From positions 438,781 to 502,780 of the forward strand of contig CBFFRP010000150.1 in assembly GCA_965644295.1 (NCBI GenBank): a stretch of DNA of 64,000 nucleotides, read 5' to 3'. The stretch comes from Paraphysomonas bandaiensis. Taxonomy: Eukaryota; Protista; Chrysophyceae. The position numbers and the translations under genes are program-made. Position 1 is the first letter of the stretch. Each line of letters begins with the position of its first letter. A model generated the notes under the pieces. It was not told where the DNA came from. It did no database searches and worked only from the letters and a program-made list of their open reading frames with translations. Positions 20,600 through 24,873 of the stretch are shown here, one piece after another.

Positions 20600-22033
20600 C
20601 TAGGAAGATGTAATTACATTCCACGCCCACATTTCAAATGCTTTAGCAGCAGCCAGAGCTATACTTTCATCTGATCCTTTGTGATATTTATCCACAGATC
20701 GCTTGCCCACACAAAACCCCATCACCACAGGCTCCCCAACGCCATCTGTCATGTCTAACCATTCTACCCAATCCAGAATCATTGGGAACTCGGATCCCAC
20801 ATACTCACCGAGCTCATTCATATCGCCTGCATAGCATGAAGTATCGTACCACCGGCATAGTCCCGTGACAGGCTTGGGCCACCATCTCGTCGTGTAGCGT
20901 AATATAACCTTCTCACAACATCCCATTCGAATACGATCCAGAGACTTCATATGCATTTCTGGTAGATTTGGGGAAAATAGTATTGTTCTATTCTGAATGA
21001 CAGAAATCGGTACAGTGCATATGCATTTATCTGCACAGATTATTTCGCCGGTTGCAGTAGTGGCAACCACCCTATTTCCAGACCAGTCGATGTGGGTTAC
21101 CGGAGTACTAAGACGAACATTTAATCCCTCCGCCTCGCTATCTAATAGTGCTACATAACCTTGCTTGATGTAATGATCTTCATTACCAACACCGAGCTCC
21201 TCCAATCCCCATACTGCAGAGGTGTCATCCAGGTCGTACCCAAGGTCAGAGTTGATGTCGCCAGCCACTGCTAAATGAGCCAAAAACTGTTCATCCCTGG
21301 GAAAACGAGATATGCTCTGCTGTAATACACCCATCAGTGGAAGGTCCACTTCCTTCCCGCCATCTGAGGAGCCACTAAAATCGTTAACAGTCACCCAGAC
21401 GTGGTCGTACACACGCTCCACAATACCACGCATGCCAGAAAGTGACCGACCATTGCTAGCAGAACATAATGCATCATGAAAACATGTAGGAACAACATCC
21501 AATTCCATTCTATTCACTGCGTGCTCCGCCATGAAGTTCGTAGGAAACTGTTGGAGCCAAGTTGCCCCCAAATCAACCTTTACTGACTTAACCGAGGAGT
21601 CTCTGCCAATATCCACAGTGTGAACACGCCCCCCAATTCGATCTCTCGCTTCCAAAACTATCACATTCTCGTTTCCGGCCAATTCTCTGAGTCGCGATGC
21701 GGCATATATTCCAGCGGCCCCGGCTCCTATCACGACGTAACTCAACGCTCCATCCGACGCTGACTCATACATCATATTGGCAGCTCTCAAGCCGCTGTAC
21801 GCCGCCCCGTGCACCATAGATGGCATATGGTCTGTACAAGCTTCGCCGGCTAGTATGAGAGCATCGGAAATGGGAGAGCCTAGCACTACACGATCACTAG
21901 GGCTGCCATTCACCCTAAGCTGAGACCATGCGCCCTGAGAGTAAGGGTTCTCGCTCCAATGGGAGACTTTCCATTCCACTGGTGTGTGCTCTTTATCATG
22001 AAAGAATTCAGTCCGTGAGGAATAAGAATGCAT
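20600..22033 (-). CDS. Flavin-containing amine oxidase (MAO/PAO family), circularly permuted, intronless, about 477 aa
   Basis: Starting at MHSYSS: HWSENPYSQGAWS..LILAGEA..MVHGAAYSGLRAA, then VVIGAGAAG..LEARDRIGGR..DLGATW..VRLSTPV..ADKCICTVP..FSPNLP..EKVILRY..WW. Confidence 0.88.
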   Translation of the reverse strand: MHSYSSRTEFFHDKEHTPVEWKVSHWSENPYSQGAWSQLRVNGSPSDRVVLGSPISDALILAGEACTDHMPSMVHGAAYSGLRAANMMYESASDGALSYVVIGAGAAGIYAASRLRELAGNENVIVLEARDRIGGRVHTVDIGRDSSVKSVKVDLGATWLQQFPTNFMAEHAVNRMELDVVPTCFHDALCSASNGRSLSGMRGIVERVYDHVWVTVNDFSGSSDGGKEVDLPLMGVLQQSISRFPRDEQFLAHLAVAGDINSDLGYDLDDTSAVWGLEELGVGNEDHYIKQGYVALLDSEAEGLNVRLSTPVTHIDWSGNRVVATTATGEIICADKCICTVPISVIQNRTILFSPNLPEMHMKSLDRIRMGCCEKVILRYTTRWWPKPVTGLCRWYDTSCYAGDMNELGEYVGSEFPMILDWVEWLDMTDGVGEPVVMGFCVGKRSVDKYHKGSDESIALAAAKAFEMWAWNVITSS

Positions 22034-22058
22034 TACAAGAATGTGAAGATGGATACAC

Positions 22059-22063
22059 GTATG

Positions 22064-22094
<31 letters not shown>

Positions 22095-22147
22095 GTATGT
22101 ATGTATGTATGTATGTATGTATGTATGTATGTATGTATGTATGTATG

Positions 22148-22178
<31 letters not shown>

Positions 22179-22549
22179 GTATGTATGTATGTATGTATGT
22201 ATGTATGTATGTATGTATGTATGTATGTATGTATGTATGTATGTATGTATGTATGTATGTATGTATGTATGTATGTATGTATGTATGTAGGTATGTATGT
22301 ATGTATGTATGTATGTATGTATGTATGTATGTATGTATGTATGTATGTATGTATGTATGTATGTATGTATGTATGTATGTATGTATGTATGTATGTATGT
22401 ATGTATGTATGTATGTATGTATGTATGTATGTATGTATGTATGTATGTATGTATGTATGTAGGTATGTAGGTATGTATGTATGTATGTATGTATGTATGT
22501 ATGTATGTATGTATGTATGTATGTATGTATGTATGTATGTATGTATGTA
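22059..22549 (+). repeat. (TATG)n microsatellite, about 490 bp, abutting the left TIR
   Basis: About 122 units with rare TAAG/TAGG variants. Confidence 0.97.
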
Positions 22550-24133
22550 CAGTGCACTCTCGATATGATCAAGGGTCTGTACCATAGGCAAACTATTTCT
22601 CATAACGAGAGTGTTGACCATTAGAAACCCCAGTTTTATTTTATAGAAACCATTTTTTTTGTAAAAAACCCGGTTTTGTAGAAAAAACCCAGATATTTTT
22701 TGTAAAACTCAGTTTTTGGATATTAAAACCATGGCTTTATGCTCAAAACTCCTACCTCTATGTTTAAATATTTAAAATAGCCTTGTTATTACATCATAGG
22801 CATGCGTTGTCTGATCTTAGCTACAATAGGACAGCTGTATAACCTAGAATTACTACATAACTGCTATAGTGTAGAATTAGATCTCTGCACCGAGAAAAAT
22901 TGTTGTATCGTTCGTTGTGACGAAGATTTTGCGCGCTTCTCTAAGTAACTTCTAGTCACTTCTGAAGCGGTCTTAACAAACGTGTAGTGCCAGGTAGCAG
23001 AATTTTCACTACTACTTTCCATAGTAAAGTCATATACAACTCGCATGGCATCATTGAATTGATTCAAAGTTACCGTAGATGAAGACGCGCGGTCTATATT
23101 TGTATCACTTTGACAATCATCATCCACCAGCGGTATTTGCGGAGAAATAGAAAAAGATTCCAAGCGCTCCATGGCTTCCTCAATTTCAGTTTCGACTACC
23201 AATTGATCACTTTCAACATCACACCATCACAACAGCATCTTCCAATTGTTTCATCACTGCAATACCGTTCACCTTTCCATACATCATCCAGTATATTCAT
23301 ACAGTCCAAGATATGTGGTTTCAAACCGTACATAATTCCTTTGCAAACAGATTAACATGAATAAAACTGTTTCGACTCTTCAACACATTGTTTAACCAAC
23401 CGCTCGATGCTTTAAATAAACTGCGCGTTTCTTCATCTTCTTTATAGATTATCTATAAAACACAATGTTTAGAATATGTATTATTTTCTTCTGGATCTTG
23501 TAGACCTTTGCATAATCCTTAGCCTTCTGCTGCAGGTACAACCAGCTCAAGCCGCATTTATCCGTCTTGTAGTTTTCTTGGCGAAATTTAATGTAGTCAA
23601 CAATTTTTTTCTCAACCTCAGGAAATGAACCCTTCCGTTGCTTCTTGCGGCCTGTGCAAGTTTCTATCTTCAGTGTTCCATCATTGCAGGCTTTAATCCA
23701 TTTACTTAATGCTGAAGGGCTAAATATGTTTCCCTTGTACGCAACGAATTGCTTGAGGGTTTTGAAATGACCCTCTTTATATTCTTTCACAAAATTATAT
23801 TTCTGCACATCCGAGAAACTACTCAACGATTTCTTGCGCTTGGTACCGATGCTGCATTCATCTGACATCGCTGCGTACAGCAGACGAACAAATGCAGTAA
23901 TGTATGTATATGTAATGAATGTGTTCATGATTATTGCATACAGCAGTATTGTACTCTCTGCACATATCCAACACTTTCACAAAACCCTAACCCAAAAGAG
24001 GGGTTTTTTATTAAAAACTAAGGATTTATATAAAATGGGGGTTTTCATGCTAAAAACCCCGTACCAATGCCTATTCCGTTTCCCATAACGAGAGTGTTGA
24101 CCATACATCGATGATCATATCGAGAGTGCACTG
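22550..24133 (-). mobile_element. pogo/Tigger-like (Tc1/mariner superfamily) DNA transposon, internally deleted, 1,584 bp
   Basis: Perfect 22-bp TIRs CAGTGCACTCTCGATATGATCA / TGATCATATCGAGAGTGCACTG with TA on both sides; internal CENP-B-type HTH ORF and PIP-box tail. Confidence 0.92.
22864..23870 (-). pseudogene. pogo-type transposase lacking the DDE/D core, containing a spliceosomal intron
   Basis: HTH region (SPSALSKWIK..RKKQRKGSFPEVEKKIVDYI..LQQKAK) is spliced via GTCTAC..TTATAG (about 23453-23505) to IIYKEDEETRSLFKASSGWLNNVL; acidic C-terminus ends QRTIQQFF. Confidence 0.8.
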
Positions 24134-24245
24134 TATGTATGTATGTATGTATGTATGTATGTATGTATGTATGTATGTATGTATGTATGTATGTATGTAT
24201 GTATGTATGTATGTATGTATGTATGTATGTATGTATGTATGTATG
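24134..24245 (+). repeat. (TATG)28 microsatellite abutting the right TIR
   Basis: Pure TATG units start at the TA target site. Confidence 0.97.
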
Positions 24246-24337
24246 CATATTAATGTATTTTTCAATTAGCATTATATTGTCGTGTACTGGGTGGTTAGTT
24301 GTTTACGTTCGATCGACCAACATATTTGCGATAAAGA

Positions 24338-24873
24338 ATGTCTGACGACGGCGACTACGAGGATAACCACGACAGGCGAAGCCGCAACAAGGGGAGGAGG
24401 AAAGGCAGAGGCCATGCGCACATGGATGACGAGGATAGGTACAAGGGCCGTGGCGGTGTATTTGAAACAATTGAACAGGAATCTACTGATGGACCAGCAC
24501 AATGTACGTATTTTCTTTATGCATCTGATGTACTTATGTTATCCGCTTATAGCAATTGAGGGATGGATTGTGTTTGTGTCGAATGTTCATGAGGAAGCCC
24601 AAGAAGATGATATACTGGATAAGTTCTCTGAATATGGTGATGTGAAGAATATTCATGTCAATCTTGATAGACGAACTGGTTTTGTTAAGGTTATCTCTTT
24701 CATTGTAAATTTAATATTATCTTCACTCCATGAATCTGTAGGGGTATGCGTTGGTGGAATTCGAGTCGCGAGACGACGCTGCGGAAGCAATAGACAAGAT
24801 GAATGGTCAGGAATTACTGGGGCAAACAGTTACTGTTGATTGGGCGTTTGTAGCACGGCCAAATAAGCGTTAG
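24338..24873 (+). CDS. RBM8A: RNA-binding protein 8A / Y14 (exon junction complex), 3 exons
   Basis: KGRGH..GPAQ|..[45 protein letters not shown]|[15 protein letters not shown]; stop TAG at 24871-24873. Confidence 0.96.

Follow-up and report, generated by a model that had tools for sequence, protein, structure and literature searches.

A 64,000-nt stretch of contig C150 from the genome of the marine protist Paraphysomonas bandaiensis (hereafter the window) contains a transposable element of the pogo family that is flanked on both sides, with no spacer, by arrays of the tetranucleotide TATG. The original prediction took element and satellite to be mechanistically coupled, either because the transposon writes the repeat through its own excision footprints or because it homes to it. 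In all likelihood a pre-existing (TATG)n tract was split here by the TA-duplicating, cut-and-paste insertion of an internally deleted element, and the coupling takes the form of a quantitative landing preference, not of a repeat-writing mechanism.

In this account, the tract would have occupied the gap between two head-to-head genes first, and a recently mobilised, internally deleted pogo-family element would then have inserted into one of its TAs and divided it in register. As the window copy encodes no transposase, it would have depended for its movement on one supplied in trans, for instance by an autonomous relative like the 2,569-bp copy of another contig, C558. The clade prefers a TA preceded by a purine and followed by a pyrimidine (R-TA-Y, mostly GTAC) and uses the TAs of TATG/CATA tracts at ~6-8 times their share of TA sites. 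Elements would also exit again, with excision and end-joining leaving terminal bases between two TAs, mainly as TACAGTA or TACTGTA and less often as TACATGTA, and tracts would thereby come to carry a fossil record of earlier visits.

An element in register within an abundant satellite

The element measures 1,584 bp and occupies window positions 22550-24133, with its coding sense on the minus strand (G000:C150:461330-462913 in genome coordinates; C-numbers are contigs of the 62.56-Mb assembly). It ends in perfect 22-bp terminal inverted repeats (TIRs): CAGTGCACTCTCGATATGATCA on the plus strand at 22550-22571, and its perfect complement on the minus strand at 24112-24133. With the neighboring TA included, each inverted arm measures 24 nt (22548-22571 and 24112-24135), and the two are 100% complementary. 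Arrays were called by Tandem Repeats Finder, which places 122.8 copies of the unit on the left (22059-22549; 97% matches, with variant units TAAG and TAGG) and 28.5 copies on the right (24132-24245; 100% matches), the portion outside the element amounting to ~28 perfect units (24134-24245); neither array is assigned a strand. The final TA of the left array (22548-22549) is one copy of the target duplication and the TA at 24134-24135 is the other. The two arrays share the same polarity, and their phase is restored once the element and one TA are taken out. Size, TIRs, unit numbers (about 122 and 28) and register had all been described correctly in the original prediction.

The label pogo-like also holds. 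As judged by its TA duplication, its TIRs and the DDE_1 transposase domain of its relatives, the element belongs to the pogo family within the Tc1/mariner superfamily. DDE_1 is found in a 1,970-bp sister copy and in the C558 relative, and a TA stands on either side of the window copy and of each of the 22 copies whose two flanks were tabulated.

The satellite had been described as having no counterpart elsewhere. This is true of the window, in which Tandem Repeats Finder detects no further period-4 array, but not of the genome. The (TATG)10 40-mer occurs 127,451 times in the whole genome and the corresponding 44-mer 123,925 times; the difference therefore corresponds to 3,526 perfect runs that reach 10 units or more. 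Together these comprise 159,185 units over 636.7 kb and make up 1.02% of the genome. The expectation is ~3.6 perfect runs per 64 kb (3,526 in 62.56 Mb), where one interrupted tract like that of the window counts as several runs, and a single tract per 64 kb is roughly as the genome average predicts.

Could the element have built the array around itself, by repeated excision and re-insertion or by slippage seeded by its footprints? The array unit does equal TA followed by the TG in which the element ends. However, an element is present in fewer than 1% of tracts, with ~15 in-array elements of the clade set against 3,526 runs, and more than 99% of the runs are thus without one. Copies at plain sites have grown no TATG units: this is true of the sister of the window copy, which occupies a plain TA site, and of a copy on C425 at a plain GTAC site, which is 100% identical over 1,796 bp to a copy inside a tract on C322 (both of the B lineage). 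The left array, moreover, contains the old variant units TAAG and TAGG, yet the element is near-identical to its sister. Because the array runs in register across the insertion and because of these genome-wide numbers, the array in the window is probably older than the insertion.

Landing preference and probable excision scars

Insertions of the clade were counted with the pattern TA + CAGYSMRYTCKCGWTW, the TIR consensus of the lineages of the family and of a second pogo family, whose reversed form as a control gave 0 matches. The pattern returned 106 ends, and ~70 insertions were resolved by eye from 13-nt flanks among the 100 of 106 ends listed; the counts that follow refer to these. Fourteen of the ~70 lie in perfect TATG/CATA tracts, on contigs C58, C66, C67, C112, C127, C150 (the window copy), C191, C198, C215, C217, C322, C357, C406 and C443, and they span four lineages of the window family as well as the second pogo family. 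Several more insertions of the census are no more than ~12 bp from a tract, and on C88 one more copy lies in an array, its terminus being a variant that the pattern does not cover. TA sites with at least three TATG units upstream number 155,497, and arrays make up ~3.1-3.4% of all TA sites at a TA frequency of 0.081, taken from the non-array part of the window. At a share of 3.4%, 2.4 in-array insertions are expected (binomial P=9e-8).

The remaining ~80% of insertions lie at ordinary R-TA-Y sites, mostly GTAC. Among half-sites at ordinary positions, the base at -1 is G in 19 of 28 and A in 8 of 28. This rule would by itself favor the TA of the array (G-TA-T) ~2.3-fold, raising the expectation to 7.8%, against which 14 of 70 gives P=9e-4. 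An accidental hit on an abundant satellite by an element with no preference is therefore hard to sustain. Tracts cover 1% of the genome and ~3.4% of TA sites, so a single insertion would be unremarkable, and about four in five copies of the clade lie elsewhere; yet the excess of in-array copies, together with 151 canonical scars within arrays, rejects chance, which is very unlikely to be the explanation. The tabulated flanks support a landing preference for TATG/CATA tracts of ~6-8-fold per TA that covers ~20% of insertions and is neither exclusive nor TATG-specific. Of the homing originally envisaged, it is this preference that stands, and not a restriction to pre-existing arrays.

The in-array copies include very young ones. 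Four copies of the D lineage, at 98.7-98.9% identity, have flanks that are all different; three of the four are in arrays and the other lies near a (TAGG)n tract, 8 bp away. Since their flanks differ, the in-array copies are independent insertions and not segmental duplicates. The second pogo family (TIR CAGCGCATTCTCGATATATCGCGG) shares 36% amino-acid identity with the window family, and five of its ~22 insertions are in register within TATG/CATA tracts. Its copies include C217:390022-392437 (L111:2023-4438), a 2,416-bp copy with a 385-aa open frame that is inside a TATG tract and in register, as well as C66:330496-334011, C191:35699-37546 and C443:25840-27451.

Traces of departed elements were sought genome-wide as arrays in which three bases separate two TAs (TATGTATGTA-NNN-TATGTATG). 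There are 220 such interruptions; CAG or CTG (together CWG) accounts for 151 of the 220, against 1 in the reversed-pattern control, and the remainder are mostly single-base insertions. The 151 scars are spread over ~95 tracts. Both types occur in one tract on C294, and on C191 an extant element and a CTG scar stand ~40 bp apart in the same tract. TA-CAG-TA and TA-CTG-TA match the residue of a CAG...CTG element that was excised by a 3-nt staggered cut with closure by end-joining, and the array scars are thus best read as excision footprints of elements that would repeatedly have entered and left the tracts. Lesser classes are TA-CATG-TA (40 matches in ~31 tracts), TA-CAGTG-TA (in several tracts) and TA-CA-TA (35 matches). 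The last is ambiguous as proof of 2-nt footprints, two transitions (TATG to TACG to TACA) being a plausible route to it.

Scars are also found at ordinary insertion sites. Of ~72 ordinary element ends, 5 have a complete TACWGTA immediately next to the TIR (P~1e-3 with the preference for G at -1 allowed for), namely at L010:2183-2189 (the right flank of the sister copy, C150:2809-4778), C25:164992, C236:147528, C289:34548 and C352:49788. The excess is confined to the full heptamer: CWG just before TA at ordinary ends shows no significant excess once the preference for G at -1 is allowed for (P=0.27). Scars abutting TIRs suggest that the same TA is re-used, or that an old scar attracts elements. 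Tandem scar forms such as TACTGTACTG are seen beside elements on C352 and C297. A family copy without a terminal repeat starts directly after (TATG)124 and a TACAGTA scar at C236:157600-157700 (L115:1100-1200), and possibly represents an element cut short at the tract.

The scar spectrum bears directly on the writing of the satellite. The original prediction assumed that the transposase cuts 2 nt inside the CA...TG ends, an excision that adds TATG units; the dominant scar is instead 3 nt long, and it interrupts the repeat rather than lengthening it. The minor classes TA-CA-TA and TA-CATG-TA would fit 2-nt remnants, an invisible TA-TG-TA event adding one unit is conceivable, and the heptamers at ordinary ends speak for re-use of sites. 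Such invisible events would nevertheless number only tens against 159,185 units. That the element wrote its satellite is next to impossible in the light of these numbers.

How, then, do the tracts grow? One scar or variant unit recurs at regular intervals within tracts at C186:119333-120174, C64:235952-236586, C485:44922-45623 and C504:11113-12718. Given such regular spacing (265/291/265 bp on C186, for example), tracts also grow by the duplication of blocks of tens of units, beyond single-unit slippage.

Causes of the preference and objections

The landing preference could arise from the transposase, from chromatin or from selection. Tc1/mariner elements like TA within alternating, deformable TA-rich sequence, and it is plausible in this superfamily that the transposase itself favors a TA set in alternating purine/pyrimidine DNA. 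Such an intrinsic liking is the foremost candidate cause of the preference, at somewhat less than an even chance. Open promoter chromatin is a possible cause but an improbable one, and better survival of the insertions that fall in tracts is slightly less probable again.

The last two can be joined in a single alternative, in which the transposase does not itself favor the repeat: tracts would be open, untranscribed DNA in promoter gaps, where insertions are easy and cause little damage, and insertions elsewhere would be purged from a compact genome. The window tract does occupy such a gap. On its left a flavin amine oxidase gene runs on the minus strand (20600-22033; Amino_oxidase, E=5.5e-46), with its start ~29 bp from the array, and on its right lie the exons of an RRM protein gene in divergent orientation on the plus strand (24282-24839; RRM_1, E=3.1e-7); array and element fill the head-to-head intergenic gap. 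Without the element, the TATG tract of ~150 units makes up nearly the whole gap between the divergent genes (window 22034-24340). If the R-TA-Y bias is allowed for and arrays are taken as 10% of usable DNA, the enrichment falls to P~0.01. Against retention or accessibility stands a more distant pogo-like family (TIR CAGTGGATGGCCCC), none of whose ~8 copies is in an array. The pattern is present, too, in very young copies (the identical pairs, and three of four in the D lineage). Short (TA)n repeats point the same way: the genome contains 1,057 (TA)8 16-mers, seven (TA)n sites bear a CWG scar, and scars are, on these small numbers, ~7 times denser per site there (7/1,057) than in TATG tracts (151/155,497), which suggests a preference for DNA sequence or structure. 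That retention or accessibility accounts for the pattern is accordingly unlikely, though it keeps a real share of the probability.

A stronger version of targeting, in which the clade truly homes to (TATG)n through recognition of the repeat sequence or structure by its transposase, possibly with a preferred orientation, is doubtful. The transposase-sense strand reads (CATA)n in 7 of the 9 in-array copies of known strand, which is not significant (two-sided P~0.18); the exceptions are C88 and C217. Around ordinary target sites, the alternation of purines and pyrimidines (mean score 6.79 against a background of 6.20) likewise shows no significant departure (P=0.13), and only positions -1 and +1 are clear. 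Two clade insertions, C217:379093 and C379:113419, abut (TG)n-like sequence (GTATGTGTGTGTG-TA) and a third, C277:68066, abuts (TA)n-like sequence, which fits a general liking for alternating purine/pyrimidine repeats.

Several points weigh against the insertion of a landing-prone element into an older tract as set out here. Neither an empty orthologous site nor a second-haplotype contig was found, and the left flank occurs once in the assembly. The census misses ~19% of non-array ends and relies on classification by eye from a 13-nt flank for 100 of 106 ends, and the expected share of 3.4% uses the TA frequency of the window alone. Enrichment among surviving copies cannot tell targeting from retention. 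As for the scars, block duplication can multiply them within a tract, as on C186, so that the 151 matches represent fewer independent events; nor are they assignable to the window family alone, as any CAG...CTG-ended, TA-duplicating element would yield them. Finally, the junctions are known from the assembly, and long microsatellites are classic sites of misassembly, so the element might have been misjoined into the repeat. The in-register TA junction recurs, however, at 14 independent loci that differ in element and in flanks, and the unique flanks of the window form a coherent head-to-head gene pair, the left one being single-copy in the assembly; a misjoin is extremely unlikely.

Relatives, known systems and implications

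[quoted passage not shown] The sister copy (C150:2809-4778) and the window copy share three blocks of 100% identity over the arms, with isolated mismatches over the full alignment, and the 328-aa open reading frame (ORF) of the sister gives a partial Pfam match to DDE_1 (E=1.7e-9). DNA searches with the element find ~30-40 related loci at 72-88% identity. One of these, the 2,569-bp relative at C558:84-2652, looks autonomous and intact: a 127-aa upstream exon precedes a 476-aa ORF with a complete match to DDE_1 (PF03184; E=1.1e-22, 80.9 bits against a cut-off of 22). Its motifs NADQT, LLDNC and PMDMG contain D53, D165 and D199, the putative catalytic residues as judged by motif, with 33 residues between the last two Asp. 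The transposase gene of the family is split by an intron, and Pfam reports no helix-turn-helix (HTH) family, such as those of the CENP-B, psq or HTH_Tnp_Tc5 type, at E<=0.1 in the conserved N-terminal exon of 127-159 aa.

The window copy retains parts of this gene, all on the minus strand. A 159-aa ORF remnant (23449-23928) has its homolog in the N-terminal exon, which in the C558 relative encodes 127 aa, and remnants of the C-terminal half of the transposase (22867-23351, from C150:461647-462009 and 462012-462131) correspond to residues 208-328 (98% identical, with one TGA) and 92-131 of the 328-aa ORF of the sister. None of the ORF pieces, the 159-aa remnant included, matches a Pfam family significantly. 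The copy is non-autonomous because its internal deletion has removed most of DDE_1 along with the putative first catalytic Asp. A 26-nt subterminal repeat (22596-22621, plus strand) has its second copy at 24079-24104 in direct, not inverted, orientation; it includes the reverse complement of the TIR core CACTCTCG, and the element ends are thus asymmetric, the motif pair being inverted at the left end and direct at the right.

Smaller derivatives of the same TIR families, of MITE size (~70-100 bp), are seen at C43:7349-7449, C211:111191-111291, C379:113343-113434 and on L101 (C302); that on C43 is 12 bp from a (CATA)n tract, with a scar-like CCAGTA between. The element family is also found in sequencing-run contigs of four organisms, with other deletion variants. 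Copies in the runs X6 and X18 from other organisms show different internal deletions, such as one that skips 361 bp and has 20 replacement bases and another that skips 399 bp. As the same family carries differing internal deletions, deletion derivatives arise repeatedly. A metagenome scan for the junction of array and TIR gave no match. Eight metagenome contigs that match the TIR pattern alone were rejected as chance, none having a TA beside the match and their sequence looking unrelated.

The family shares with pogo, Tigger and Fot1 the TA duplication, short TIRs starting with CAG, a DDE_1 domain with D..D..D motifs in its apparently intact copy, and deleted as well as MITE-sized derivatives. 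It differs in its intron-split transposase gene, in having no Pfam match to an HTH at the N terminus and in placing about one fifth of its insertions in one tetranucleotide microsatellite. To our knowledge, such a preference has not previously been described for pogo elements, and a limited literature search found no report of pogo elements concentrated in a tetranucleotide microsatellite.

With respect to excision, the Tc1 and Tc3 elements of C. elegans make a 2-nt staggered cut. CA...TG termini and the TA target are common to them and to the elements described here, and the minor TA-CA-TA and TA-CATG-TA scars would fit 2-nt remnants, but the main scar here is 3 nt long (151 against 35-40 matches) and the transposase is of the DDE_1 (pogo) and not of the Tc1 type. 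Sleeping Beauty, whose canonical footprints are TACAGTA and TACTGTA (PMC6943129), offers a closer parallel among Tc1/mariner elements with a 3-nt cut, as the dominant array scars are identical to these footprints. Here the footprints are read from a natural genome and not from an assay, with the additional TACATGTA class and a preferred non-repeat target of G-TA-C.

DNA transposons that target microsatellites are known from plants, Micron among them. MuTAnT, SaTar and Ac-mMITE are reported to be plant cut-and-paste elements that lie within microsatellites in phase and far above chance (PMC4486113, PMC5907723, PMC8449440). All three derive from Mutator, (TA)n is the target of MuTAnT and Ac-mMITE, Ac-mMITEs frequently occur in clusters, and SaTars form multimeric arrays. 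Enrichment in one microsatellite far above chance (14 of ~70 against 3.4%) is common to them and to the present clade. The differences are that the elements here are pogo elements with DDE_1 and a 2-bp TA duplication, not Mutator-like with 9-10-bp duplications at non-repeat sites, that the repeat is a tetranucleotide and not the (TA)n of MuTAnT and Ac-mMITE, that only ~20% of copies and not most of them are in the repeat, and that no multimeric arrays were seen.

Taken alone, the element in the window is an ordinary dead transposon copy, and its value lies in the genome-wide pattern to which it leads. The idea of a transposon that writes its own satellite is disposed of. Instead, the satellite takes about one fifth of the insertions of a pogo clade and keeps ~150-230 excision scars, an archive that gives an in vivo footprint spectrum without an experiment, mainly 3-nt and like that of Sleeping Beauty. 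These scars testify to past cut-and-paste transposition and end-joining repair in the lineage, and they make transposon excision a measurable source of microsatellite interruptions. So far, reports of microsatellite targeting by DNA transposons concern mainly Mutator-derived elements that insert at (TA)n in plants, and the pogo clade of P. bandaiensis provides a system for asking whether such targeting is intrinsic to the transposase or due to chromatin or selection. Should the clade truly home to (TATG)n, the satellite would be a landing pad that doubles as a readable archive of excision.

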